From contig NC_090404.1 of the NCBI RefSeq assembly GCF_036365525.1, positions 4,216,001-4,280,000 of the forward strand: a stretch of DNA of 64,000 nt. Reading direction: 5' to 3'. This document shows positions 9,172 to 61,300 of the stretch, piece after piece; positions within the stretch are counted from its first letter, which is position 1; every line of letters starts with the position of its first letter. The position numbers were made by a program, and so were the translations under genes. The notes below the pieces were generated by a model that saw only the letters and a program-made list of their open reading frames with translations, did no database searches and was not told the origin of the DNA. The DNA is from Heterodontus francisci (Eukaryota).

Positions 9172-10965
9172 CGTGTGCTGTGGACAGAGTGGAACCAGTG
9201 GATGGAGCTTACTTAGGTTTCCAGAAGGCATTTGATAAGGTGCCACATCAAAGATTATTGCAGAAAATAAAAGCTCATGGTGTAGGGGGTTACATATTGA
9301 CATGGACAGAAGATTGGTTAGCTAACAGCAACAGAGAGTCGGCATAAATAGGTCAGTTTCTGAATGGCAAGATGTAACGAATGGTGTGTCACAGGGCTCT
9401 GTGCTGGGGCCTCAACTTTTTACAATTTATATAAATGACTTCGATGAAGGGACCGAAGGTATGGTTGCTCAATTTGCTGATGACACAAAAATGGCTGGAA
9501 AGTAACTTGCAAAGAGGACATAAGAAGGCTACAAAGGGATGTAGATAGGTTAAGTGAGTGGGATAAGATCTGGAAAAGTGTGCATAATGTGGGAAAGTGT
9601 GAGATTGTCCATTTTGGCAGGAAGAATATAAATGAAACATGTTATCTAAATGGTGAGAGATTTCCGAGCTGTGAGATGCAGAGGGATCTTGGTGCCCTAG
9701 TGCATGAATCGCAAAAGGTTAGTATGCAGATACAGCACATAATTAGGAAAGCTAATAGAATGTTATCGTTTAATTGAATACAAAAGTAAGCAGGTTATGC
9801 TTCAGCTATAAAGGACGTTGGCGTGACCACATCTGGATTACTGTGTACAGTACTGGTTCCTCATTTAAGGAAGGATGTAAATACGTTGGAGGCAGTACAG
9901 AGATGGTTTCCGAGATGAATACCTGGAATGGATGGGCTTTCTTACCAGGAAAGGTCCTGGGGAAAATTGATATACAGAGAGATTTGGGTGTTCAGGTCCA
10001 TTGTTCCCTGAAGGTGGCAACGCAGGTCAATAGAGTGGTCAAGAAGGCATACGGCATGCTTTCCTTCATCGGACGGGGTATTGAGTACAAGAGTTGGCAG
10101 GTCATGTTACAGTTGTATAAGACTTTGGTTCGGCCACATTTGGAATACTGCGTGCAGTTCTGGTCGCCACATTACCAAAAGGATGTGGATGCTTTGGAGA
10201 GGGTGCAGAGGAGGTTCACCAGGATGTTGCCTGGTATGGAGGGCGCTAGCTATGAAGAGAAGTTGAGTAGATTGGGATTATTTTCATTCGAAAGACGGAG
10301 ATGGAGGGGGGACCTGATTGAGGTGTACAAAATCATGAGAGGTTAGATAGCAAGAAGCTTTTTCCCAGAGTGGGGGGTTCAATTACTAGGGGTCATGAGT
10401 TCAAAGTGAGAGGGGAAAAGTTTAGGGGGGATATGCGTGGAAAGTTCTTGACGCAGAGGGTGGTGGGTGCCTGGAACGCGTTGCCAGCGGAAGTGGTAGA
10501 CGCGGGCATGATAGCATCTTTTAAGATGTATCTAGACAGATACATGAATGGGCAGGAAGCAAAGAGATACAGACCCTTAGAAAATAGGCGACATGTTTAG
10601 ATAGAGGATCTGGATCGGCGCAGGCTTGGAGGGCCGAAGGGCCTGTTCCTGTGCAGTAATTTTCTTTGTTCTTTGTTCTTTGAAAGATAGGATGAGGTTG
10701 GCTTGCATCAGCTGGAACTTAGAGGAGTAAGAGGCGACTTGATTGAAACATATAATATCTTGAGGGGGCTTGACAGGGTGGATGTGGAAAGGATGGTTCC
10801 CCTTGTGGGAGAATCTCAAACTGTTACTGTTTAAAATTAAGGTGTCGCCCATTTAAGACCGCGATGAGGAGAATTTTTTTCTCTCAGAGGGTCGGCAGTC
10901 TTTGGATTCCTCTTCCTCAAAAGGCAGTGGAAGCAGAATCTTTGAATATTATTAAGGTAGAGTTA
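9172..10965 (+). mobile_element. CR1 LINE RT/3' region with a younger CR1 3' fragment nested at ~9955-10680
   Basis: FQKAFDKVPHQRLL, QFADDTK, LVRPHLEYCVQFWSP; nested copy ends in a tttgttc repeat tail. Confidence 0.9.
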
Positions 10966-16119: not shown

Positions 16120-19100
16120 CAAATTCATTGAAACCCTAATTAACTATTTAATTAATAAATAGAGGAGCAACTAATCCGGAGGGAGGAGATTACTGCATTT
16201 AATATTTATAGTAGAAAGCTAGCGCTAGGGACCATATAGTTAATTGTAACTTTATTTAGTAAGGATTTAATAAGTATTTATTTTAAATTAATGTATTAAT
16301 TAGTGCTAGAAATGTCTGTTAGAGGGGTAAAGTGCTTCACCTGTGAGATGTGGAAGGTCCATGACACTTCCAGCATTGCGGACAACGTCATCTGCAAGAA
16401 GTGTACCCAATTGCAGCTCGTCACAGACCGCATGGATCGGTTGGAGCAGCAATTGGATGCGCTTAGGAGCATGCAGGTGGTGGAAAGCATCATAGACAGG
16501 AGTTTTAGAGATGTGGGTACACCCAAGGTGCAGGCAGATGGATGGGTGACCGCTAGAAGGGGCAGGCAGTTAGTGCAGGAATCCCCTGTGGCTGTCCACC
16601 TCTCTAACAAGTATATCGTTTTGGATACTGTTGGGAGGGATGGCCTATCTGGGGAAAACAACAGCAGCAGCCACAACAGTGGCACCACGGCTGGTTCTGT
16701 TGTTCAACAGGGAGAGACAAAGCGCAGAAGAGCATTAGTTCTTGGGTAGTCAATAGTCAGGGGCACAGATAGGCGCTTCTGAGGACGTGAAAGAGACTCT
16801 CAGATCGTATACTGCCTTCCTGGTGCCAGGTTCAATGATGTCTCTGAATGGGCAGGGGGCATTCTGAAGGGGAAGGTGAACAGCCAGAGTTTGTGATACA
16901 CACTGGTACCAACGACATAGACAGGAAGAGTGACAGGGTTCTGCAGGAGGAATAACTTCGGTAGTAAGTTAAAAAACAGGACCTCTCGGGTTGTAATTTC
17001 GGGATTACTCTCTGTGCCACGTGCCAGTGAGGCTAGAAATAAGAAGATAGTGCAACTGAACACGTGGCTAAACAGCTGGTGTAGGAGGGAGGGTTTCAGA
17101 TATCTGGATCATTAGGATCTCTTCCGGGGCAGGTGGGACCTGTACAAGAAGGACGGGTTGCATCTAAACTGGAGGGGCACAAATGTCCTGGCCGCAACTT
17201 ATGCTCACGTCACTCGGGAGGGTTTAAACTCGTGTGGCAGGGGGGAGGGAACAAGAGCAGTTGGTCAGCAGGTGAAGCAACTGAGGGGGAACTAGTAAAT
17301 AAGGCCAGTAAGACTGAGAGGAAGAGCAGGCAGGGAGATGTTGCTGAGCACTGCGGGACTGGTGGTCTGAAGTGCATTTGTTTCAATGCGAGAAGTATAA
17401 CAGGTAAGGCAGATGAAATTAGAGCTTGGATTAGTACTTGATGTTGTTGCTATTACAGAGATTTGGTTGAGGGAAGGGCAGGATTGCCAACTAAATGTTC
17501 CAGGATTTAGAAGCTTCAGGCGGGATAGAGGGGGGTGAAAAAGGGGTGGGGGAGTTACATTACTGGTTAAGGAGAATATCACAGCTGTACTGTGGGAGGA
17601 TACCTCGGAAATCTCATGCAGCGAGGCATTATGTAGAGCTCAGGAATAGGACGGGTGCAGTCACAATGTTGGGGGTTTACTGCAGGCCTCCCAACAGCCA
17701 GCGGGAGAGAGAGAAGCATATATGTAAATAGATTTTGGAAAGATGTAAAAGCAACATGTTTGTTGTGGTCGGTAATTTAAACTTTCCCTATTTTGACTGG
17801 GACTCAATTAGTGCTAGGGGCTTGGATGGGGCAGAATTTGGAAGGAGCATCCAGGGGGGCTTCTTGAAACAATGTGTAGATTGTCCAACTAGGGAAGGGG
17901 CCGTACTGTACCTGGTATTGGGGAATGAGCCCAGCCAGGTTGTCGAAGTTTCTGCAAGGGAGCATTTCCGGAACGGTAGCCATAATTCCGTAAGTTTTAA
18001 GGTTCTTGTGGATAAGGATAAGAGTAGTCCTCCGGTGAAGGTGCTAAATTGGAGGAAGGCTAATTATAACAATATTAGGCAGGAACTGAAGAATTTAGAT
18101 TGGGGGCGGCTGTTTGAGGGTCAATCAACATCTGGGAGTCTTTCAAACGTCAGTTGATTAGAATCCAGGACCGGCATGTTCCTGTGAGGATGAAAGATAA
18201 GTTTGGCAAGTTTTGGGTACCTTGGATAACGAGGGATATTGTGAGCCTAGTGAAAAAGTAAAAGGAAGCATTCGTAAGGGCGAGAAGGCTGGGAACATAC
18301 GAAGCCCTTGAGGAATATAACGAAAGTAGAAAGCAACTTAAGCAAGGAGTCAGGAGGGTTAAAAGCGGTCATGAAAAGTCTTTGACAAACAGGATTAAGG
18401 AGAATCCCACGGCTTTATATACGTATATAAAGAACAAGAGGGTAGCAAGGGTAAGGGTTGGCCCACTCAAGGACAGAGGAGGAAATCTATGCGTGGAGCC
18501 TGAGGAAGTGTGCGAGGTACTAAATGAGTACTTTGTATCAGTATTCACCCAAGAGAAGGACTTGGTGGATGATGAGGCCGGGGAAGGGAGTGTAGATAGT
18601 CTGGGTCATGTCGATATCAAAAAGGAGGAGGTGTTGGGTGTCTTGAAAAACATTAAGATCGAGATGTCCCCAGGGTGTGATGGGATCTACTACCCAGAAT
18701 ACTGAGGGAGGCAAGGGAGGAAATTGCTGGAGCCTTGACTGAAGTCTTTGTATCCTCATTGGCGACAGGTGAGATCCCAGAGGAGAGGAAAATAGCCAAT
18801 GTTGTTCCTTTTTTTAAGAAGGGTGGTAAGGATAATCCAGGAAATTAGAGGCTGGTGAGCCTTACGTCAGTGGTAGGGAAATTATAAGAGAGGATTCTTC
18901 GGGACAGAATTTATTCCCATTTGGAAACAAATGGACTTATTAGCAAGAGGCAGCTTGGTTTTGTGAAAGAGAGGTCGTGTCTCACTAACTTGATCGTGTT
19001 GTTTGAGGAAGTGACGAAGATGATTGATGAAGGAAGGGCAGTGGAAGTTGTCTACATGGACTTAAGTAAAGCCTTTGACAAGGTCCTTCATGGCAGATTG

Positions 19101-20165
19101 GTACAAAAGGTGAAGTTACACGGGATCAGAGGTGAGCTGGCAAGATGGATGCAGAACTGGCTCGGTCATAGAAGGCAGAGGGTAGCAGTGGAAGGGTGCT
19201 TTTCTGAATGGAGGACTGTGACTAATGGTGTTTTGCAGGGATCAGCGCTGGGAGCTTTGCTGTTTGCAGTATATGTAAATGATTTGGAGGGAAATGTAGC
19301 AGGTCTGATGAGTAAGTTTGCGGATGACACAAAGGTTGGTGGAGTTGAGAATAGTGATGAGGATTGTCAGAGGATACAGCAGGATATAGATCGGTTGGAG
19401 ACATAGGCAGAGAAATGGCAGTTGGAGTTTAATCCGGACAAATGTGAGGTAATGCATTTTGGAAGGTCTAATACAAGTGGGAAGTATACAGTAATGGCAG
19501 AACCCTTAGGAGTATTGACAGGCAGAGAGATCTGGGCGTACAGGTCCAAAGATCACTGAAAGTGGCAACGCAGGTGGATAAGGTAGTCAAGAAGGCATAT
19601 GGCATGCTTGCCTTCATCGGTTGGGGCATAGAGTATAAAAATTGGCAAGTCATGCTGCAGCTGTACAGAACCTTAGTTAGGCCACACTTGGAATATTGCA
19701 TACAATTCTGGTCGCCATACCACCAGAAGCATATGGAGGCTTTGGAGAGGGTACAGAAGAGGTTTACCAGGATGTGGCCTGGTCAGGAGGGTATTAGCTG
19801 CCAGGAGAGGTTGGATAAACTCGTATTATTTTCACTGGAACGACAAGGTGGAGGGGTGACATGATAGAGGTTTACAAAGTTATGAGTTGCATGGACAGAG
19901 TGCTTCGTCGGAAGGTTTTTCCCAGGGTGGAAGAGTCAGTTACTAGACGACATAGGTTTAAGGTGCGAGGGGCAAAGTTTAAAGGGGATGTGCGAGGCAA
20001 ACTCTTTACACAGAGGGTGGTGAGTGCCTGGAACCTGCTGCTGGGGGAGGTGGTGGAAGCAGGTACGATAGTGACGTTGAAGAGGCATCTTGACAAATGC
20101 ACGAATAGGATGGGAATAGAGGGATACGGTCCCCGGATGTGCAGAAGGTTTTAGTTTAGACAAGC
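16120..20165 (+). mobile_element. Near full-length but inactivated CR1 LINE (ORF1 Zn-finger/SGNH esterase; ORF2 APE endonuclease plus RT)
   Basis: ORF1 CFTCEMW...CKKC, VIHTGTNDI, DGLHLN; ORF2 CICFNARSI, SKAFDKV, SKFADDTK, VRPHLEYC; multiple stops and frameshifts. Confidence 0.92.
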
Positions 20166-24418: not shown

Positions 24419-24813
24419 TCATTGACATGAATTAACGGTGTCCAACAGTGCAAGGGAAATGTTCACAAAACTCGGTTTACCGCTGGATTTATTAACTGTT
24501 CTGTTGATGATCTTCAAGGGGATCGCTTCATGTCCCACCACACAGGAGTAAGAAGTGCCGCTGGCCCACTCCTCTGCTGCAATGGATAACAGGCTGTAGA
24601 TGAAGAAGGAGCTCTTGTCGTTCTCCGCCATCACCTCGGTGTTCTTGTAGTTGCCGGGATTCACTGACTTGTCATTGACGGTCCACTTGACGAAGATCTC
24701 TCGGGGGGAGAAACCTCTCACTAAGCAGGTGAGGGAGAGGAACCTCTCAGCGGAGATTTCTTCTGCTGGGGGCAGGAGAACAGACACAGACGGTTCCCGC
24801 AGATCTTTCCATG
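24419..24813 (-). CDS. IGHM: IgM CH4 exon plus secretory tailpiece
   Basis: [15 protein letters not shown]...[17 protein letters not shown]...[43 protein letters not shown] (penultimate Cys, N-I-S glycan site); AATAAA at 24385-24390 and 24372-24377. Confidence 0.97.
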
Positions 24814-25282
24814 CTGAAAAATTAAAATAAATGTCAATAAACTAGACAATTTCAGAGACAATGACACCGGTGGTTAAATGTGAGAGAAATTGTGAAGGTT
24901 TTCCTTTTCCTCTCTGGGGCCTGTGCTGTTTTCCAGCCGGTGCAGAGGCGCTACAATCCTGCTCGCCGAGAACATAAAGGATTAGATTGGAAAATTACAT
25001 AGAACTTGCAGCACAGGAGCAGCTATTAGGAGGAGCTAGCCTATGCTGGTGTTTATGCTGCACACGGACCTCCTCCCACCTTACTTCAGCTCTTTCTATT
25101 CATTTCTCCATTATCTACGTATCTAGCATCACCTGAAATGCATCACCTCTGGTCCCAGGGAGGTTCAATAGTGAATTACAATTAAATTATCAGCGTAATC
25201 CATTCAACCACTTAATTGGGCCTTGCACAAACACCGGCAAGAAGCACAACCTCTGAGTTATTGCTTCAATCACATTGCTCAC

Positions 25283-25588
25283 CTTCCTTGTGGATGGAAT
25301 CTCTGAGAGGAGTCGGCAGATCCTGATGGCTCACCACACAGGAGAACACAGCCTCACTCAGCCAGGCTTGTGTCGAGATGTCTACAGTGCTGATCACGCT
25401 ATCGGGTTCCTCTCCGGGTTGGACGGCAATCTCTGATTTCAAAGGCTTCTGTTCTTGTGTCCAGGACACGTTGACACCATAAGGAGCATTAGACACGACG
25501 CAGGTTAAGGTGACCGTCGCCTTCAGTAAGACCTGTTCTATTGATGGTGGCAGTAGTTTAATTACTGGATGATTGCACTCGGAAGAAT
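25283..25588 (-). CDS. IGHM: IgM CH3 exon
   Basis: [31 protein letters not shown]...[21 protein letters not shown]; canonical splice sites, phase 1. Confidence 0.96.
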
Positions 25589-26089
25589 CTGTAGAACAGA
25601 AATGAGAGTCAAAGAAATCTCCATCTTCAGGATCAGGACGCGAGTATTTAACTATCACTTTCTTCAGGAGGGGAAAAACACCTTTCACTTCAACACTGTC
25701 GTTCATGGGAAGGGCAACGATTTGTAAAATCTGGGACATCCAAGCGGATCACATCTCTGCTGAATATAATGGCTCTGTCACCCCAGGACATGAGCTACAC
25801 ATGTAATTCATACTGGCTCAAAACGAATGAAATTACGAATTTTAGGACCAACTGGAAACAAAGTTAATGTTCTGGTGCCTTGTCAGTATATTTGGGGAGA
25901 TGAAAATGTTCAGCAACCAGACAGAGGAGGGGCGAAAGGTCGGTAAAATGCAGTCCCAAGGTTTTTGTGTGGTGAGGAATAATTCGCAATACTGGACGAG
26001 ATAGTTTTCTAATATCTGCCACGAGTGAGTATTTCTCATGTGTCGGCCTGGAGTTAGAAGGCGATCTGACCACAGGACTGTAATAAGAA

Positions 26090-26720
26090 CATAAGAATAA
26101 GAGTGGGCTATTCATCCCCTCGAGCACGTTCCGCCATTCAATTGCACGATGGCTGAATTGTATCTTAATTCTGTTTACCCATATATAACCCTTAATACCC
26201 TTACCTGTCAGAAATCTATCACTCACAACATTAAAATTTTCAATGGATGTCAAGCTTCTAAAGTGAATTGGGGGTGAGAATTCCAGATTACCGCTATCTA
26301 CTGTGTGAATACTCCCTTCCTGATATCATTCCTGAATGACCATGGTCTAATCTGAAGGTTATGCCCCCTTGTTCTGAAGTTCCTCACCAGAGGAAATATT
26401 TTTCTCCATTGACTCCATCAATTCCAGTAAACATCTTAACCACCTCAATTAGATCACCCTTTAATCTTCTATACTCAAAGCAATACCAGTTTGGCCTGTG
26501 AAACCTGTCCTCATAACTTAACCCGATCAGCCCCGTTATCATTATGGTCAATTCTTGTTGCACCACTCCCAAGGCCAATACATTCTTCCTGTGCTCTGCA
26601 GTCCAGAATTGAACACAGTTTTCTAAAGAGGGTAGATGCTCTTTCTGGCACCTGATTCCGAGGCCGTTACCAAGAAAGGGTTCCAGATGCCGATTGCTGC
26701 TCCGTGTATGATTAGCCCAT
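26090..26720 (-). mobile_element. CR1 LINE 3' fragment in the CH2-CH3 intron
   Basis: LENCVQFW...RRLKGDLIEVVKM. Confidence 0.8.
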
Positions 26721-26986
26721 TCAGGATAAAGCTGATATACAGGCCACCTCACTCACTATATAACATCACAGTAGAGCTAAACATTCTTTCATGATGTGAT
26801 GACATGTTGAACCGTGAGCAATCCTAATTTCTAATTTCTAAATCCTAAACTCACAGCCAAATAACACATAAAAACTGCACGATGGCGATTTAGAAATTGT
26901 TCTTTGTACAAACTCCAATAAATTCCTGACTTTCAGTAACATGGAGTACAGAAAGATGTGGAGTTTCCTGGGACTGTGCCTCTTAC

Positions 26987-27304
26987 CTGGAGATCCGGTG
27001 ATGTTTCGGCTTTGGGTGACCGCTTGATGGGAGACCTGGCAGGTATAGACCGTGTTGGTGAACCATTCCCGAGCGGGGACTGTCAGCCGACTGGTCGCTG
27101 AGAAGTTCCCGTTCGTTTCACAGGCGGGAGAGGTGACGAAGCCCGATTCCATGGGATGTCCATCCTTCAACCAACTCACGGTTATTGCTTCTGGATGGAA
27201 ATCGATGATTGAACACACGACAGTCGCAAATCTGCTGCTTCTGATTTCTTCACTGGAAGTCTGGGTGAGGATAACAGTTGGATGGACGATGTCACCTTTA
27301 CAAT
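26987..27304 (-). CDS. IGHM: IgM CH2 exon
   Basis: [14 protein letters not shown]...[21 protein letters not shown]...[20 protein letters not shown]; canonical splice sites. Confidence 0.96.
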
Positions 27305-27516
27305 CTTCAAGAAAAAACATGTTAGACATTTCTAGAAGAAATTAATAACTAATACAAACTGTTCTTATATTTTAACAGGTTATTTGCATCAAGCAGGCAC
27401 TAACTGATGTTTCCAGCGGTCTGAACTGTGCACAACACTCGAAATGTGGAATAGCCAAAGTTCTACACAAGATCCGTCGAGCTTTTCTGTTTTTCCACAG
27501 TTTCCACAACACTAAC

Positions 27517-27813
27517 CTGGAATTTCCTTGATCCAGAGCGACTCTCCGCGTCGAACCTCGCAGTAGATTTTGCTGCTTCCCACCTCTGACTCGGTGATGG
27601 TTAACTGGCTGCTCAGGGTGTAGGTTCCCTTCTTGTTCAGCACTGACGGGTAAGTCTTCAAACCAGTGGTGATCGGTTCTTCACCTTTCTTCCAGGAAAC
27701 GCTGGTGATTTGGGGGATGTAGTCCATCGCCAAACAGCCGTAGGCCATGGAGCCGTCGGTGTTGGGTTGTTCACAGGAGCACAGGCCGTAAAGGGTTGGG
27801 GGAGACGGTGTCG
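27517..27813 (-). CDS. IGHM: IgM CH1 exon
   Basis: [42 protein letters not shown]...[17 protein letters not shown]; closely resembles shark mu CH1. Confidence 0.96.
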
Positions 27814-29499
27814 CTAGGAAAGAATGGCAAATTGAACAAGTTAGACTGTGATTCATGCTTATTAAATAACCAGACATCTCGCAATTCGATTCCAGCTGGA
27901 AACTGATTCCAACATTTTCCGATTAAAACCTTCATCCGCATTTGAGCTGCGATCAGTTACATCATTTGGTGATCATCACCTGTGGGTCCCCTGGTCAGGA
28001 ACACACCTCTCTTTCAGGACCTGTCACATTACAAAAGTAAGAGCCTTTTGAAGTTATCTCAATAAGGTATTTTTCATTGGATTAAACTGAAAGAGGAGTT
28101 TCCCCGCTTTGTTCGGCCAATATTTATTTCTAAATCAACAACACTTGGTCAAAAAACATGCGGCATTTAATTTTTGGAAATTTCTTCTCTGCAAATTGAC
28201 TTCTGGGTTTCGCCGCACCTCCACCTCCTCCCAGCACCCCTCCCCACCACCAGCAGACCACCCCGCCCCCCCAACAACCACTCCCCCTCCAAAAAAATAG
28301 CAACTACTCCTAAAAAGTGCCATTGGAATGCGTGCTTATGAAATGAACGTAATACTGTAAACTTGAATACCAGGCAAATTCATTCCATTATTTTCCCATA
28401 AAAACCTACAAAACATCCGAACATGCTTATGACCCAGGGTGATAAATTCATAGACATGATAGCTGAGAAGAAGGCCATTCGGTCCATCAGGCCTGTGAAA
28501 GATGACCTTCCAATTTGTAATCTTTTCAAAATTTCATTTTATCCAGCTATTTTAGATTCTATTTACAGCCCTCTTTCTGATTGGACATTCCAGATCCTAA
28601 CAACCCCCTGTGTAGAAAAGTAGATTCATACCCTCTTCCTTCATTCTTTTGACGCTGATTTTAAATCAGTGCCCTCTACAGACCAACTCACTGATCTGGG
28701 CAAATTGGTATCTGAATTTCTGTATAAAATATTCATTATTCAAAACACCACTACCAGACTTCATTTTAATCTTCTATGTTCCCATAATAATGAAGAACTT
28801 TTACAATAAATAGTTGAAGTCTACTTTAAAATATGGACTGAATCATTTAGTACACAGATTTCAGAGGGGAATTTTTACACAGCCTAGTTTCTGGAATTAA
28901 AGTTTTTAATGACTCGGCAATTACTCTAAGCTATCACTTTCCTTTTCAGTACTTGAAGATTGTGACTTCTGTTCTATATTATTCGACTGAATGGATTCTC
29001 TGGAGTTTGCTTCTCCCTCCAACTCAAATAATAAACCGAATTAAATCCGATTCCTAAAAATCGGTCATTTGGACTGATGCGCTTTAAATGGTCCATTTAA
29101 CTTTCCAAAGTATCTTCCCACCCCTCACCAGTGAGAACTGGTGTTGCTGACTGTGTCGCTACAGACACATCTTCTTGCTGCTTGCACCGACCGTATTGTA
29201 AACATCAGGACAGGTTTCTTCTACAAATATCTGATATTGTCATTACTTACACATTATAAATCGAGTGAATATCAGTCGGTTCCAGGCAAGGAAGGACAAA
29301 AGTTCCTGAAGTGTTATTGCTGACATGGTCAACTCTCACTTCTGATTTGTGCGGACAATTCAAACACCTGAGGCCCATCGGTCTGATATTGGAAGCTCGC
29401 TCACCAATATGATGTGAAAGAGGATGCCGGTTATGCTGGCACAACAGTAGGACATATGGGCTTTCAAATGGCATTAGATAACATGTCAGGTAAGAGAAC

Positions 29500-34700: not shown

Positions 34701-35155
34701 TACCACTGCTCAAAATAGATCAAAATATCAGAAGGCTATTTTTGACCACTGAAGCTTTCTGCATAATTTTATTTCAAACATATTTAAAGACTTATTGTTT
34801 CTATTAGATCAGAAAACCTGCAGCAACTAGATGTCACCCAGATTAAACATTGCAGAAACGTCAAACGGTTTAACAACAGTTTGGTATTTAAAGTAGCCCA
34901 AACACTCAGTCCCATCAACAAATAAACACCAAATCACATCAATCTGGAGCTGAATCCTTCAACAGTACCGTGTGTAAAGAAACCATTAAGTTCTTTAATC
35001 CCTTTGCAGCAGAATCACATAAAACATTGCAACAAATCTCAATATAGAATCCACCAAATCCACTTTTCAGTGAACGACTGTATCATTACAATAAACAGAA
35101 ATATAAAATTAAAAACACAAATAAAACAGTTAATGAATAAATGTATGTTTCTTAC

Positions 35156-35203
35156 CTGCAGTCACCGTCACCATGGTCCCTTGTCCCCAGTACTCAAGAT
35201 AGT
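35156..35203 (-). CDS. IGHJ: JH segment
   Basis: YLEYWGQGTMVTVTA with WGxG motif and gtaag donor at 35155. Confidence 0.95.
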
Positions 35204-35205
35204 CC

Positions 35206-35220
35206 GGTATGGCAGTGGGT
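35206..35220 (+). other. D1 segment (ggtatggcagtgggt), inverted relative to V/J/C and fused to JH
   Basis: G-rich D-like 15-mer on the + strand followed by a 22-spacer RSS; abuts JH through cc (35204-35205), palindromic to its gg end. Confidence 0.8.
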
Positions 35221-35258
35221 CACGGTGCTGTACAGAGCGAGTTCTTCATCCAAAAACC
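35221..35258 (+). other. 22-bp-spacer RSS (D1 3' type)
   Basis: cacggtg + 22 nt + ccaaaaacc. Confidence 0.9.
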
Positions 35259-35569
35259 TCAGACAGGGAGTTTGCTCAAACCAGCGATCACTAACACGGC
35301 AGATGGTCCTTAAACAATGAGGGTTAAATATAAAATTGGGGAAATACAATATTGATTTGTAAAATTGTATAAAAGTCTCCTGCTTTATTCATGTTGACTG
35401 TCACGCTAAATCAGCACAGATGATTCAGAAATATTGCGATCCCTTTATAAATATAATGACTGGTATAAACTGAATTATCTCACTGATGTACTCTTAGGGT
35501 GATTGGAATCATGTTTTTGAGAGCGCTGTGAAATGTAATCTCTGTATTTTACAGTTAACAGTCCGCCGC

Positions 35570-35638
35570 AGTATTTGACACGGTATGTCTCACTGTGATA
35601 TATTGGGTGGCACAGCAGTTACTGTCAATACAAAAACT
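35570..35638 (+). other. D2 segment (35598-35610, atatattgggtgg) flanked by 12/12 RSSs
   Basis: agtatttga-12-cactgtg | atatattgggtgg | cacagca-12-acaaaaact. Confidence 0.93.
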
Positions 35639-35964
35639 CCCTCAGCACTAATTGATGAGTCTGGGTCAGTGCTCGCTTTAACAATCCAACTATATATACA
35701 GTGAAGTTCTATTTGTGTCCAGCACTGTCCTCCTAGCACGGTTTATTATGGATAAACGGATTAATTATTCATTCATCAGTTGGTGATTTCAATAATTGCT
35801 GATATGTTACTGTGTGAAATATAAATCATCAGGGAAATTTATAAAGAGTGAAAAGAATTATTAATGCAGTTATAATTTTACAAAGAACCATCAAGATTTT
35901 ATTTTGCCTCTGGAGTGTGGATATTTAAAATAATAATGGATTTCTCACTATTCTGTGCAGAGCC

Positions 35965-36031
35965 AGTTATTGTGTGACCCAGCCAAGGGAATGTAACACT
36001 GTGCACAGTGACACTAACCTGCACAAATACT
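35965..36031. other. Precise RSS signal joint: 23-RSS fused head-to-head to 12-RSS
   Basis: agttattgt-23-CACTGTG|CACAGTG-12-acaaatact with zero intervening bases (GTGCAC at 36001-36006). Confidence 0.95.
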
Positions 36032-36421
36032 GCACTCACTCTCTGTTCAGTACTGCCTCCCAATATTCACTTCAAATAAAAATTCACTTCTGATCTAATT
36101 CAGAATATATCCAAAAGTTTACACCATGCAGTAGGAATTGAACCCAGCTCCAAGTAACACCCTCCAGATATCAGTCACATTAAAACTAGCATCTTATCCA
36201 GATTTGCAATTGCTGATACTATTAACATTAAAAATCAGCACAGCCAAAATTAGTCGTCAGTACTTCGGTTAGTGTCTTAGATTTGTACCATTGAATTTTC
36301 ACTGTGCTACTTGTGTGAGAGACGGTCTATGGCCTGGTTCTGAACACTGCCGTTAATATTGTATTTAATAAAATTACTGACCATCAGTTTATGATGGAAG
36401 TTATCGAATTCTCTCTCCATA

Positions 36422-36460
36422 TGTTCTTGTACATGTCCAGCCCTGGTTCCTCTCATTGTG
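36422..36460 (-). other. VH 23-RSS
   Basis: Minus strand cacaatg + 23 nt + acaagaaca. Confidence 0.93.
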
Positions 36461-36765
36461 ATCTCTTGCACAGTAATAGATGGCGGTGTCTTCAGTCTTC
36501 AAGCTCTTCATGTCCAAAGCAAAAATGTTTTTGGAAGTGTCTTTGGACGCAGTAAATCGATCTTTAATCCCTGGGGCGTAGTAGTTGCTGGATGAACTAT
36601 AGTAGTGAACCAGCCACTCCAGCCCCTGTCCGGGAACCTGCCGGACCAAGCTCATCCAGTAGCTGCCAAGAGTGAACCCGCTGGTTTCACAGGTCAGTCT
36701 CAGGGAGCCTCCGGGTTTCCCGGTCTCTGCCTCTGGCTGAGTCAACACGATATCCGAATGGACAC
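36461..36765 (-). CDS. IGHV: IgM VH exon (open frame; conserved FR2 Trp replaced by Leu)
   Basis: [51 protein letters not shown]...RFTASKD...[10 protein letters not shown]. Confidence 0.96.
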
Positions 36766-36890
36766 CTGTAAAAAATATCAAAAACCCCGAGAATTAATCC
36801 TGGAGAAATGATTCCTGACTCTGTAATATTCCAGAGAGAGACTATCACTGATCCAATTAGTGAGAGACTCGGACAGTAAAAACTACTCAC

Positions 36891-36936
36891 GGTATAAGAA
36901 AACCAGCAACAGACTGAGAGAAATCGCCGACCTCAT
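36891..36936 (-). CDS. IGHV: IgM VH leader exon
   Basis: MRSAISLSLLLVFLY + c|gtgagt; 46 nt (phase 1); 125-bp intron to V. Confidence 0.93.
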
Positions 36937-50189: not shown

Positions 50190-52780
50190 GCTGGAAGGTT
50201 TAAGGTAGTTATGGAAAAGGACAAAGCTAGATCAGAAATAAAGGTACTGAATTGGGGGAAGGACGATTTCAATACGATAAAACAGTATCTGGCCTAAGTG
50301 GACTGGGAGCCGCTACTTGGAGGAAAGTCTACACCAGACCAGTGGGAGTCATTCAAGGAGGAAACAGTGAGAGTTCAAAGACAACATGTACCCGTTAAGG
50401 TGAAGGGAACCCTGGATGTCAAGGGATATAGAGGATTGGATCAGGAAAAAAGGAAGCTTTTGGCAGATTCACAGCGCTGAAAGCAGTGGAGGTACTAGAT
50501 GAGTATAGAAAGTGTAGCAGGGGGGTACTTAAAAAAGTAGTTAGGAGAGAGAAGAGTAGATAAGAAAAAACACTGGCAGGCTAGATAAAGGAAAATTCTA
50601 AAGCGTTTTCTAAGTATATTAAGGGTAAGAGGATAACCAGGGAAAGAGTAGGACCCATTAGGGACCAAAGGTGCAATCTCTGTGTGGAGCCGGAGGGCAT
50701 TGGTGAGGTTTTAAATGATTACTTTTAATCTGAGTTCACCATAGAGAAGGTCAATGTTGGTGTAGAGATCAGGGAAGGGGATTGTGATATACTTGAACAT
50801 ATTAGCATTGAAAGGGAGGAAGTATTAGCGGTTCTGGTGGGCTTAAAAGTGGATGAATCCCCAGGCCCAGATGAGATGTATCCCAGGCGGTTATGTGAGG
50901 CAAGGGAAGAGATAGCATGGACTCTGACACAAATTTTCAAATCTGCTCTGGCCACAGGAGAGGTACCAGAGGATTGGAGGACAGCGAATGTGGTACCATT
51001 ATTCAAGAAGGGTAGTAGGGATAAACCAGGGAATTACAGGCCGGTGAGTGTAACATCAGTGGTAAGGAAATTATTGGAAAAAACTCTGAGGGATAGGATT
51101 AATCTCCACTTGGAGAGGCAGGGATTAATCAGGGATAGGGAGCATGGCTTTGTCAGGGGGAGATCGTGTCTAACTAACTAGATTGAATGTTACAAGGCGG
51201 TGACTCAATGGATAGATGAGGATAAAGCAGTTGATATTCTACATGGACTTCAGTCAGGTTTTTGATAAGGTCCCACATGGGAGATTGTTTAAAAAGATAA
51301 GATCTCATGGGATCCAGGGCAATTTGGCATATTGGATCCAAAATTGGCTCAGTAGCAGGAGGCAGAGGGTTATGGTTGAGGGTTGTTTTTGCAAGTGAAA
51401 GCCTTTGACCAGTGGTGTACCGCAGGGATCGGTGCTGGGACCCATACTGTTTGTAGTGTACATTAATGATTTAGGCGTGAATATAGGAGGTGTGATCAGT
51501 AAGTTCGCAGATGACATGAAAATTGGTGGTGCCGTAAATAGTGAGGAGGATGGCCTTCCATTACAGGACGATATCGATGGGCTGGTAAGATGGGCGGAAC
51601 CGTGGCAAATAGAATTTAATCCTGAGAAGTGTGAGGTGATGCATTTTTGGAGTACTAATCAGGCAAGGGAATATATCGTGGATGGCAGGAACCTATGAAG
51701 TACAGAAGGTCAGAGGGACCTTGGAGTAATTGTCCATAGATCACTGAAAGCAGCAGCACAGGTAGATAAGATGGTTAATATAAAAGCAAAGTACTGCGGA
51801 TGCTGGAAATCTGAAACAAAAACAAGAAATGCTGGAATCACTCAGCAGGTCTGGCAGCATCTGTGGAAAGAGAAGCAGAGTTAACGTTTCAGGTCAGTGA
51901 CCCTTCTTCGGATAAGATGGTTCGCAGGGCATATGAAAATTATTAGAGGCATTTATGGGATCGATAGGAAGAAACATTTTCCCTCATGCGGATAGGTCAA
52001 TAACTAGGGGACATAGATTTAAGATAAGGGGCAGGAGTTTTAGAGGGGAGTGGAGGAAAGAAAATTCACCCAGAGGTTGATTGGAATCTGGAACACACTG
52101 CCTGAAGAGGTTGTAGAGGCAGGAACACACACGACATTTAAGAAGTATTTAGATGAGCACTTGAAATGCCATAGTATACAAGACTATGGGTCAAGTGCGG
52201 GCAAGTGGGATTACTTTTGGACAGGTGCTTGATGGTCAGCGCAGGGGCTCTGGGCCGAAGGGCCTGCTTCTGTGGTGTAAAACTCTATGACTCTGTAGGA
52301 TTCTTGACTTTATGAGCCGAGGCATTGAATATAAGAGCAGGGAGGTTATGATGGAGCTGTATAAAACACTGGTTAGGCTACAGCTGGAGTACTGTGAACA
52401 GTTCTGGGCACCACACTATTGGAAGGATGTGATTGCAGCCTCAGGAGAGGGTGCACAGGAGATTCACCAGGATGTTGCCTGGGCTGAAGCATTTCAGCTA
52501 TGCAGAGAGACTGAAAAGGCTAGGGTTGTTTTACTTAGATCAGAGAAGGCTGAGGGGAACATGATTGAGGTATACAAAATTATGAGGGGCAGTGATAGGT
52601 TGGATAGGAAGAAAATGTTTCGCTCAGCGGAGGCGTCAATAACCAGGGAGCATAGATTTAAGGTAAGGGGCAGGAGGTTTAGAGGGGATTTGAGGAATTT
52701 GTTTTTCACTCTGAGGATGGTTGGAATCTGGAATGCACTGCATGAAGAGGTGGTGGAGGCAGGAACCTTCACAACGTTTA
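50190..52780 (+). mobile_element. CR1 LINE ORF2 fragments inserted in the satellite
   Basis: SPGPDEMYPR, VPEDWRTANVVPLFKKG, SKFADDMK, LEYCEQFWAP. Confidence 0.9.
51777..51910. mobile_element. 134-bp Penelope-terminus insertion with a 12-bp target-site duplication
   Basis: gataagatggtt at both 51765-51776 and 51911-51922. Confidence 0.8.
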
Positions 52781-53681
52781 CACGATATAACACTAGACCA
52801 TGTTTCAGTTATGACTGGACTTCGTTGCATCTCGGTTTATATTACACTAACCCTATCTCTGTTCTTACTGCACCAGTCCCTGTCTCTGTTTATATTACAC
52901 TGGACCCTCTCTCGGTTTATATCACACTGGGCCATGTTGGTTTTTCACTGCACTAGGCCATGTTTCCAGTAGATGAAGAGATATTATTATAAATAAAGAT
53001 GTTAGACTGGAAATTGGTATCAGGTTACGGCCGAACGGACGCTTTTGGCTCGGCCGCCCTTTCTACCCAGGGCCTTGTGTTCAATTTCATTGCAGTCAAC
53101 GGAGTTGCTGTCTCTCCCGGGCGGTCAATCCGATAGTGACGCTTTCTGTGCCACTGCCTGAAACCAATTTCCATCTTTTGTGTTTGTGTGTTGGGCGGGT
53201 ATAATCATTTTCTGTATGGAAGAATACCTTTAACCTTGTTAATACCTATCAGTAGCTTGTGTGAAATTTCTAATTGCTCTGGTATTATGTGGGTAATATT
53301 TGTGTTGAAAGGATGGGCTGAATCCTGCAACAAGCTCCCAGAGACGGACTGGGTGGGATTGAAGGACAGGACTAAAGGTCAGTAATAGTGTACTGCACTT
53401 TACAATACTTGGTAACAAACTCTGTTGTGTTAAAGTGTACTAATTCACACTTGTGTTGTACTGTGACAATTCCTCACTTTTTAATGTTCAGGATATTTTT
53501 GTCGCTGCGGGATTTTCAATTTCGAATTCACCTGACCTCGTGATTGTGTTCGAAACAGCCTGGAACAGTGACCCCGCAGTCCCAACCGACAGGCTGCCGC
53601 AGGGTCCTAATGTCCACCAAGTTCAATCATCTGATCAACAGGGACAACTGAAATGAAAACACACAATGTTATATATCGGCG

Positions 53682-58345: not shown

Positions 58346-61300
58346 CATAGAGTTATGCAGGACATAAACAGGCCCTTCGGCCCATTGTGTCTTTCCCGTT
58401 CATCAAGCACCTAACTATTCTAATCCCATTTTCCAGCTGTTGGCTCAGAGCCTTGTACACGATGGCGTTTCAGGTGCTCATCTACATACTTCTTGTTGTG
58501 AGGGTTCCTGCCTCTAACACCTCTTCAGGCAGTGCATTCTAGATTCCAGCCACTCTCTGGGTGAAAATGTTTTCCTCAAATCCACTCTAAACCTCCTGCA
58601 CCTTACCTTAAATCTATGCCCGCTGGTTATTGACCGCTCGGCTAAGGGAAAATGTTTCTTCCTATCTAACCTATCAATGCCCCTCTAAATTTTGTATCCC
58701 TCAATCATATCTCCCCTCACCCTTCTCTGCTCTAAGGAAAACAACCGTAGCCTTTTCAGTCTCTCTGCATCGCTGAAATGCTCCAGCCCAAGCAGCATCC
58801 TGGTGAATCTTCTCAGCACCCTCTCCAGTGCAATCACATCCTTCCTATAGTGTGGTGCCCAGAACTGTGCACAGTACTCCAGCTGTGGCCTGACTAGCAT
58901 TTTATACAGCTGCATCATAACCTCCCTGCTCTGAAATTCTATGCCTCGGCTCATGAAGGCAAGTATCCCATATGCTTTCCTAACCACCTTATCTACCTGT
59001 GCTGCTGCCTTCTGTGATCTATGGACAAGTATACCAAGGTTCCTCTGACCCTCTGTATTTCCTAGGGTCCTACCATCCGTTGTATATTCCCCTGCCTTGT
59101 TAGTCCTCTCAAAATGCATCACATCACACTTCTCAGGATTAAATTCCATTTGCCAAAGCTCCACCCATCTTACCAGCCCATCAACATCGGCCTGGAATCT
59201 GAGGCTTTCCTCCTCACTATTTATGACACCACCAATTTTCGTGTCATCTGCGAACCTACTTACCATACCTCCTATGTTCACGTCTAAATCAATAATGTAC
59301 ACTAAAAACAGCAAGGGTCGCAGCAACAATCCCTGTGGTACACTACTGGTCACAGGCTTCCACTCACAAAAACAACCCTCGACCATCACCCTCTGCCTCC
59401 TGCCACTGAGCCCATTTTGGATCCAATTTGCCAAATTGCTTCTTGACCAATCTCCCATGTGGGACCTTATCAAAAGCCTTACTGAGGTCCATCAATACTG
59501 CATCAACTGCTTTATTCTCATCTACAAAATGTCACCACCGCCTCAAAACATTCAATCAAGCTAGTCAGACACGATCTCCCACTGACAAAGCAATGCTGAC
59601 TATCCCTGATTAATCCCTTCCTCTCCAATTGGAGATTAATCCTGTCCCTCAGAGATTTTTCCAATAGTTTCCCAACCAATGATGTTAGACTCACCGGCCT
59701 GTAATTCCCTGGTTTATCCGTCCTACCCTTCTTGAATAATGGTACCACATTCGCTGTCCTCCAATCCTCTGGTACCTCTCACGTGGCCAGAGCAGATTTG
59801 AAAATTTGTGCCAGAGTCCTTGCTATCCCTTCCCTTGCCTCACATAACAGCCTGGGATACATCTCATCTGGGCCTGGGGATTTATACACTTTTAAGCCCA
59901 CCAGAACCGCTAATACTTCCTCACTTTCAATGCTAATATGTTCAAGTATATCACAATCCCCCTCCCTGATCTCTACACCTACATCGTCCTTCTCCATAGT
60001 GAACACAGATGAAAAGTAATCATTTAAAACCTCACCTATGTTCTCCGGCTCCACACACAGAATGCCACTTTGGTCCCTAATGGGTCCTACGCTTTCCCTG
60101 GTTATCCTCTTGCCTTTAATATACTTGCAAAACGCCTTAGGATTTTCCTTTATCTTGCCTGCCAGTGTTTTTTCATGTCCCCTCTTCGCTCTCCTAATTA
60201 CTAATTTAAGTACCCCCCCCCCCTACAATTTCTATACTCGTCTAGTGCCTCCACTGTTTTCAGCACACTGAATATGCCATAAGGTTCCGTTTTTTTACTG
60301 ATCCAATCCTCTATATCCCTTAACATCCAGGGTTCCCTGAACTTGTTGGTTCTACCCTTCACCTTACGGGTTACATGTTGGCTCTGAACTCTCACTATTT
60401 CCTCTTTGAATGACTCCCACTGATCTGATGTCGACTTTCCTCCAAGTAGCTGCTCTAAGTCCATTTTGGCCAGATCATGTTTTATCATCCGAAAATCGGC
60501 CTTCTCCCAATTCAGTCCCTTTATTTTCCGTCCATCTTTGTCCTTTTCCATAACTACCTTAAATCTTGCAGAGTTATGGACACTATCCCCGAAATGTTCC
60601 CCCACTGACACTTCTACCACTTGTCCGGCTTCATTCCCTAGGATTAGGTCCAGTACTGTCCCTTCTCTTGTTTGGACTATCTCCGTACTGGCTCAAGAAG
60701 CTCTCCTGGATGCATTTTAAGAATTCTGCCCCCTTTAAGCTATTTGCACTGAGACGATCCCAGTTGATATTGGGGAAGTTGAAATTCCCTGCTATTATTA
60801 CCCTATTATTTTTACATCTCTCTGAGATTTGCCTACATATCTGCTCCTCTATCTCTCCCTGACTATTTGGAGGTCTGTAGTACACTCCCAGCCAAGTGAT
60901 TGCCCCCTTTGTGTTTTTAAGTTCTACCCATTTGAGGAACCTTCTAAGATATCATCCCTCCTTATTGCAATAATTGACTCCTTGATCAACAGTGCAAGGC
61001 CAACTCCTCTTTTACACCCTCCCCTATCATGCCTGCAGATTCTATTCCCTGGGATACTGAGCTGCCAGCACTGCCCTTCCCTCAACAATGACCCTGTGAC
61101 AGTAATAATACCATATTCCCATGTGTTAATCAACACCCTCAATTCATCTGCCTTACTTGTAAGACTCCTTGCATTAAAATAGATGCAATCCAGCCTTGCA
61201 TTTTGCACTTGTGCCTTAACAGGTCTATATTTGCTCTGCCTTCCAGATTGACTCAGTTTATATCGATGACTGTGCATCACCCTCTACTATACCTACACTC

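Follow-up and report, generated by a model that had tools for sequence, protein, structure and literature searches.

Immunoglobulin (Ig) genes that are already joined in the germline are known from cartilaginous fish, where heavy-chain genes occur as VD-J, VD-DJ and VDJ forms and light-chain genes as VJ forms (V, variable; D, diversity; J, joining segment), and RAG acting in germ cells has been named as their cause (Lee et al. 2000, PMC2193156; review PMC5192425). One variant cluster of Heterodontus, in which the sequence between D1 and D2 is inverted, has been read as a germline hybrid joint (Kokubu et al. 1988, discussed in PMC2193153). Inversional joining in which the signal joint is retained is described for somatic cells of mammals at Ig kappa (PMC2118803), and inverted D segments are used at IgH (PMC11775173, PMC11153149). 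Lewis and Wu (2000) proposed that D segments arise from germline signal joints that gain junctional insertions (PMC2193153, Fig. 2B ii), and at that time there was shark evidence for the other two routes only and none yet for the signal-joint route (PMC2193153). We analyzed a stretch of 64,000 nucleotides of the horn shark Heterodontus francisci (assembly GCF_036365525.1, contig NC_090404.1, positions 4,216,001 to 4,280,000 of the forward strand), referred to below as the window, which contains one IgM heavy-chain cluster on the minus strand comprising leader, VH, JH and Cmu1-4. Within this cluster, at 35965-36031, two recombination signal sequences (RSSs) are fused head to head. From the sequence, RAG probably inverted part of this shark IgM cluster in the germline by a single V(D)J recombination, and the fusion is probably the signal joint of that event.

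On the plus strand the element is made up of the nonamer AGTTATTGT (35965-35973), a 23-nt spacer (35974-35996), the heptamers CACTGTG (35997-36003) and CACAGTG (36004-36010), a 12-nt spacer (36011-36022) and the nonamer ACAAATACT (36023-36031). The coordinates and spacer lengths given in the initial annotation of this DNA proved exact when the window was read again. The border of the joint is at 36003/36004 and is spanned by GTGCAC, an ApaLI site; there are zero bases between the heptamers, both of which are consensus, with no heptamer base lost. The nonamers of both halves agree with the consensus at 7 of 9 positions in the RSS scan. Read in gene (minus-strand) orientation, the joint is a 9-12-7 signal fused to a 7-23-9 signal, located between VH, which has a 23-RSS, and D2, which has a 12-RSS. 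The exact joining of one 12-RSS to one 23-RSS by their heptamers supports the assignment as a RAG-type signal joint, which is what the initial annotation had called it. The case is now stronger than it was there because the reciprocal coding joint, an inverted D1 joined to JH, lies 800 bp away. The signatures of the two junctions point to RAG as the probable agent.

The idea that the fusion is a chance palindrome, or the end of an RSS-bounded insert placed by RAG transposition, is exceedingly improbable. The 14-mer of the joint is single copy within the window, even with 1 mismatch tolerated, and its chance expectation is 0.01 before the two correctly spaced nonamers are counted. Transposition draws some strength from the interval 36004-36306, which resembles a signal-ended fragment in having a heptamer that faces outward at each end (7-12-9 ... 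9-24-7), but the flanks of this interval, CTGTG (35999-36003) and CTACT (36307-36311), contain no 5-bp target-site duplication. The reintegration of an excised circle was also considered and was rejected, as the sequence after the V RSS or after the orphan RSS-like element X (Table 1) has no likeness to the sequence after the 23-RSS of the joint.

In gene orientation the order from V to J is V, a 7-23-9 signal (a), 115 bp, the 7-24-9 element X, 235 bp, the joint of signals b and f, 326 bp, signal e, D2, signal d, 311 bp, signal c, 15 nt and J. When 35206-36003 is read on the plus strand, it gives a full cluster interior in the usual order of parts: D1, 7-22-9, intersegment, 9-12-7, D2, 7-12-9, intersegment, 9-23-7. 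D1, D2 and their RSSs read forward on the plus strand; the minus strand carries V, J and Cmu1-4. The inverted D1 directly abuts J and is fused to it in frame at 35205/35206, which is the coding joint, and the former 5' RSS of D1 and the RSS of J now make up the signal joint. Comparison of the signals showed that b and d are identical at 21 of 28 positions, against 14 of 28 for both b/e and d/e, and that the b/d pair is the best inverted repeat of the V-J region (30 nt, 77%); for duplicated D units one would expect b and d to have stood as direct repeats until the block was inverted. The intersegment lengths are 390, 311 and 326 bp. A segment spacing of ~400 bp has been reported for shark clusters (PMC2435157), and we count the 311-390 bp spacings found here in favor of an inversion because they fit that value. 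Self-BLAST found no second copy of 35100-36800 elsewhere in the window, and local alignments between the intersegments found likeness only at the level of the RSSs. A D2-like 13-mer at 36054-36066 was set aside as being at chance level (about 1 expected by estimate).

The sense of the D segments was read from expressed transcripts. The read evidence consists of Logan contigs aligned to the region at 80% likeness, which mix many IgM clusters and are not cluster-specific; DNA and RNA runs share one sample, probably the assembled one. The inserts in the complementarity-determining region 3 (CDR3) of rearranged RNA contigs, given in gene sense, recurrently contain GGTACAG(CAGTGGG) followed by (AT)ATACTGGGTGG, the expressed D1 and D2 in that order, and a consensus for each D was drawn from 11 CDR3 strings among those listed. 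The D1 consensus, GGTACAGCAGTGGG, has its sole window match at 35206-35219 on the plus strand, with 2 mismatches in 14, abutting the heptamer at 35221. The D2 consensus, ATATACTGGGTGG, has its best match at 35598-35610, also on the plus strand, with 1 mismatch. Because both consensuses match the plus strand, D1 and D2 are in opposite sense to V, J and C. Similar D cores are present in forward sense in human IGHD6-19 and IGHD7-27. The J side of the coding joint was located in the same way: among the joints listed, rearranged RNA contigs stop aligning to J between 35191 and 35203 and in one case at 35205, and the RNA depth drops ~100-fold, from about 2,000,000 in the bin 35134-35200 to about 16,000 in the bin 35201-35267. 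Together, the end of J homology and the drop in depth place the beginning of the J segments of the family near 35203 and mark 35206-35220 as foreign to J.

A separate observation concerns one expressed CDR3 (RNA run X1, joint 35191-36464). Its D1 reads forward, and the CCCAATATGG behind it corresponds to an inverted D2 that shares the A/G variant of the D2 in the window. It suggests either somatic inversional use of D2, whose RSSs are 12/12, or a different cluster that has D2 alone flipped.

The present structure was probably produced in one step. In gene orientation the ancestral order would have been V[23] .. [12]D1[22/23] .. [12]D2[12] .. [23]J, in which the 5' 12-RSS of D1 (b) and the JH 23-RSS (f) would point in the same direction and obey the 12/23 rule. 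RAG would have cut at the borders of b with D1 and of f with J, and the ~800-bp block between the cuts would have been re-ligated upside down. The signal ends b and f would then have fused exactly to give the border at 36003/36004, and the coding ends of D1 and J would have fused at 35205/35206, possibly with 2 palindromic (P) nucleotides. D2 would have been left with swapped and inverted 12-RSSs, and D1 would have come to lie inverted on J, with what had been its 3' RSS (c) now in front of it. The resulting order would be V[23] .. [12][23] .. [12]D2inv[12] .. [22]D1inv-J - Cmu, with the two adjoining signals standing for the joint. A single inversion of this kind would account for every feature, with the exception of the orphan element X.

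Paralogue contigs bear on the same borders. Several of them break their alignment exactly at 36003 or 36004 and continue in unaligned letters (records 4, 11, 13, 14, 30). Such breaks at the heptamer borders would also be expected if D1 had simply been removed, either by a RAG cut of both D1 RSSs in cis or by an intercluster or sister-chromatid deletion between the 5' 12-RSS and the 3' 23-RSS of D1, with D2 and J untouched. The joint does have the 12/23 geometry expected of D1 and is at the place of D1, and the mechanism has been proposed earlier (Lewis and Wu 2000, Fig. 2B ii, PMC2193153). We nevertheless find the removal of D1 very unlikely, because it leaves four features unexplained: the D1-like 15-mer that lies inverted at the heptamer beside J, the sense of D2 opposite to that of the expressed D2, the J homology that ends 15-17 nt short of the heptamer, and a paralogue contig that diverges left of 35213 rather than entering the conserved J. 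This last contig (record 26) has 96 unaligned letters left of 35213 despite the strong conservation of J, and it is one of three contigs that start at 35213, inside D1. A depth bump at 35938-36004 fits the inversion and the simple deletion alike and was not used as support. An intercluster joint as the origin of the 36003/36004 fusion was rejected, D1 and D2 both being retained in inverted sense nearby.

If the structure is real, we consider it highly probable that the inversion occurred in the germline, because there are no non-templated (N) additions at the junctions and an assembly consensus is unlikely to reflect one lymphocyte. Non-templated bases abound in the CDR3s expressed in these data, and the absence of N additions at both junctions fits a cell without TdT. 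A somatic origin, in which the assembly would have captured the inversional D-to-J rearrangement of a lymphocyte clone, or a local mis-assembly, appears quite unlikely to us. Signal joints retained on the chromosome by inversion are known in lymphocytes, for example the primary inversions of Ig kappa (PMC2118803), and no bridging read from an independent individual is present among the contigs listed. However, the assembly consensus needs most reads, which a single B-cell clone cannot supply, and the N additions present in expressed CDR3s are absent here; a mis-assembly would not yield a base-exact signal joint plus a coding joint.

Several points weigh against a germline inversion. Its germline status is drawn from the presence of the structure in the assembly, the lack of N additions and the runs of one sample; among the contigs listed for this one sample none bridges either junction, and none bridges 36003/36004 with at least 31 letters on each side. 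The D1 match has a window-wide chance expectation of 0.42, and the argument leans on its exact position at the heptamer. The arrangement that we regard as normal is inferred from contig breakpoints and the 11 CDR3 strings listed. Finally, the inversion offers no explanation for element X, before which there is no partner RSS or recognisable coding segment. Letters 36011-36019, with which the spacer of RSS b begins, repeat the nonamer of X in inverted orientation, and this 9-mer has 4 copies in the window against 0.38 expected. The 12 and 23 spacers that a normal D1 would have are deduced from its partners in the window together with what is known of such clusters.

The initial annotation had described the joint as a D segment of zero length. 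The geometric part of this description stands: the 12-RSS of the joint faces V (23) and its 23-RSS faces D2 (12), so that it is compatible on both sides and fits the 12/23 position of D1 between VH and D2. The joint is not, however, D1 stripped of its coding bases, as D1 persists upside down on J and D2 likewise lies inverted; between the heptamers of the joint there are no germline coding nucleotides. As a working segment in B-cell precursors, the joint would offer RAG a 12-RSS to pair with the V 23-RSS, or a 23-RSS to pair with the 12-RSS of D2, would add a round of trimming and of N and P addition with no germline D bases, and would be kept by selection. We consider this unlikely. Besides the correct geometry on both sides, it can be said in its favor that both heptamers are still perfect and that the D segments of Heterodontus vary little between clusters and have been suggested to serve mainly junctional diversity (PMC2191167). 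Against it, the perfect heptamers may merely mean a recent event, a coding end joined to a heptamer would usually erode that heptamer, and direct V-D2 joining deletes the joint. In addition, signal joints have been found to be poor substrates for nicking and cutting by RAG, yet they stimulate the cutting of the partner RSS (Kirkham et al. 2019, PMC6509286), which qualifies the re-cleavage of signal joints that had been put forward as established.

Most likely, the joint itself is a passive scar. Its functional use as a template-free D is possible geometrically but, judged from the sequence, doubtful. A broader proposal is that germline signal joints are recurrent and are retained in the IgH clusters of this shark, and that this one is active in lymphocytes. 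Its role there would be either that of a template-free D, giving junctional diversification one more round, or that of a "cut-and-run" partner, through which RAG is stimulated to break the V, D2 and DJ signals nearby. This would be a long shot; if true, either role would show, in an animal living today, a signal joint on the proposed way to becoming a new D.

The cluster around the joint may well remain usable. All the coding parts are open; in the frame of J the fused D1inv-J gives PTAIPDYLEYWGQGTMVTVTA, and no frame of D2inv contains a stop. The remaining RSS pairs all obey the 12/23 rule, V(23) with D2inv(12) and D2inv(12) with D1inv-J(22). The cluster should still be able to assemble V-D2inv-(D1inv-J) in B cells and to give heavy chains with both D segments upside down, the expected form of the product being V-N-CCACCCAATATAT-N-ACCCACTGCCATACC-J. 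The joining of V to D2 would delete the signal joint. If the cluster is used, the presence of both D segments upside down would provide a distinct coding set for CDR3. The coordinates of all parts of the cluster are collected in Table 1.

Table 1. Parts of the IgM cluster in the window, in order of position. Signals are given as heptamer (7), spacer length and nonamer (9); assignments to ancestral parts follow the proposed inversion.
Feature	Position	Strand	Description
Cmu1-Cmu4 exons	24419..27877	-	Open frames 27512-27877, 26838-27329, 25266-25739 and 24419-24787; the last with the mu secretory tail; four C1-set domains
JH	35157..35203	-	..DYLEYWGQGTMVTVTA; ends ..WGQGTMVTVTA; GT splice donor at 35156; RNA contigs run from 35157 into Cmu1 sequence
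Coding-joint nucleotides GG (gene orientation)	35204..35205	-	Palindrome CC/GG with the D1 end; may be P nucleotides or first J bases
D1	35206..35220	+	GGTATGGCAGTGGGT; inverted, fused to JH; only window match of the expressed D1 consensus (gene sense)
RSS c (putative ancestral 3' RSS of D1)	35221..35258	+	CACGGTG-22-CCAAAAACC; today the RSS of the fused D1-J
Putative ancestral D1-D2 intersegment, 311 bp	35259..35569	+	Inverted; paralogue contigs (records 9, 17) align over 35213-35554
RSS d (putative ancestral 5' 12-RSS of D2)	35570..35597	+	9-12-7 on the plus strand; J side today
D2	35598..35610	+	ATATATTGGGTGG, 13 nt; inverted relative to V/J/C; match of the expressed D2 consensus (gene sense)
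RSS e (putative ancestral 3' 12-RSS of D2)	35611..35638	+	CACAGCA-12-ACAAAAACT; V side today
Putative ancestral D2-J intersegment, 326 bp	35639..35964	+	Now inverted relative to V/J/C; assigned from the model by position in the block
RSS f, inverted (putative ancestral JH 23-RSS; 23 half of the joint)	35965..36003	-	7-23-9 in gene orientation; paralogue alignments stop exactly at 36003 or 36004
RSS b (putative ancestral 5' 12-RSS of D1; 12 half of the joint)	36004..36031	-	9-12-7 in gene orientation; best inverted-repeat partner of RSS d
X, orphan RSS-like element	36267..36306	-	Perfect heptamer, CACAGTG-24-ACACTAACC; in the V-D1 interval, outside the inversion; paralogue contigs (records 13, 15) cover the region
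RSS a (VH 23-RSS)	36422..36460	-	CACAATG-23-ACAAGAACA
VH exon	36461..36765	-	Open; ends ...TATTACTGTGCAAGAGAT; Pfam V-set E 1.4e-15; most similar to Heterodontus V, with 85% identity to H. francisci HV01
VH leader exon	36891..36936	-	Starts ATG AGG TCG; MRSAISLSLLLVFL...; leader start as in Heterodontus francisci HV01

The intron between leader and VH (36766-36890, 125 nt) is skipped in RNA contigs, and no octamer ATGCAAAT was found near the V promoter. When the region of the V 23-RSS (36401-36460) is translated through, it can be likened to a Chiloscyllium V annotation (protein P0002), which has HSERSQVWTHSKT at the same place; going by this likeness, the spacer of the V RSS seems to be conserved between distant shark lineages. 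The contigs of an RNA-like run (X8, organism B) are 93-97% identical to the non-coding intersegments at 35385-35654, 35678-35872 and 36160-36411, with almost no cover of 35871-36003, which points to a very close relative or to a difference in labelling. Outside the cluster, at 1-24000 and 38000-64000 of the window, there are many open frames resembling reverse transcriptases of the long interspersed nuclear element (LINE) type on both strands (for example 58685-59473, 52312-52956, 9774-10346 and 18921-19406), and open frames encoded by simple repeats are also present around the single IgM cluster.

The activity of RAG in the shark germline has so far been argued from pre-joined coding joints and one hybrid-joint inversion, and a coding joint alone is open to doubt. 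A base-perfect signal joint in cis with its reciprocal coding joint would be the full signature of the V(D)J reaction written in a genome. It would mean that one event in the germline is enough to flip D segments and change their order, to reassign RSSs, such that the 3' signal of D1 becomes the signal of "J", and to set two RSSs with the geometry of a D between V and the segment that follows, which is the raw material for the birth of a D in the proposal of Lewis and Wu (PMC2193153). A natural cluster that has a chromosomal signal joint beside usable partners would also provide an in vivo handle on re-cleavage versus "cut-and-run". Our literature search found no account of a germline signal joint, or of an inversion that retains a signal joint, in the Ig genes of cartilaginous fish; key older papers were outside the search, and an earlier description is possible.

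The locus shares with the germline-joined shark Ig genes the fusion of segments at RSS borders within one minilocus, here of D1 to J. It differs in that those genes, as far as the reports describe them, are deletional and keep the coding joint alone, whereas here the event would be inversional, the signal joint survives, and D1 and D2 are upside down with their order swapped. With the Heterodontus variant of Kokubu et al. it has in common the kind of shark, the locus and a germline RAG-type inversion in a V-D-D-J cluster that reshuffles the RSSs. In that variant only the RSS-bounded spacer was flipped through hybrid joints, with neither a standard signal joint nor a coding joint; here the standard pair is found and the block carries D1 and D2. 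The somatic inversions likewise involve two RSSs in the same direction, keep the coding and signal joints in cis and leave an inverted D in the DJ, but they are lymphocyte events and are not inherited, whereas the present structure is in a genome assembly without N additions and is presumably germline. Lastly, a 12/23 signal joint between V and a downstream segment is the very precursor state proposed by Lewis and Wu; unlike their precursor, the one found here would have come from an intracluster inversion and not an intercluster deletion, has no inserted bases, and is in a cluster that already contains D segments.
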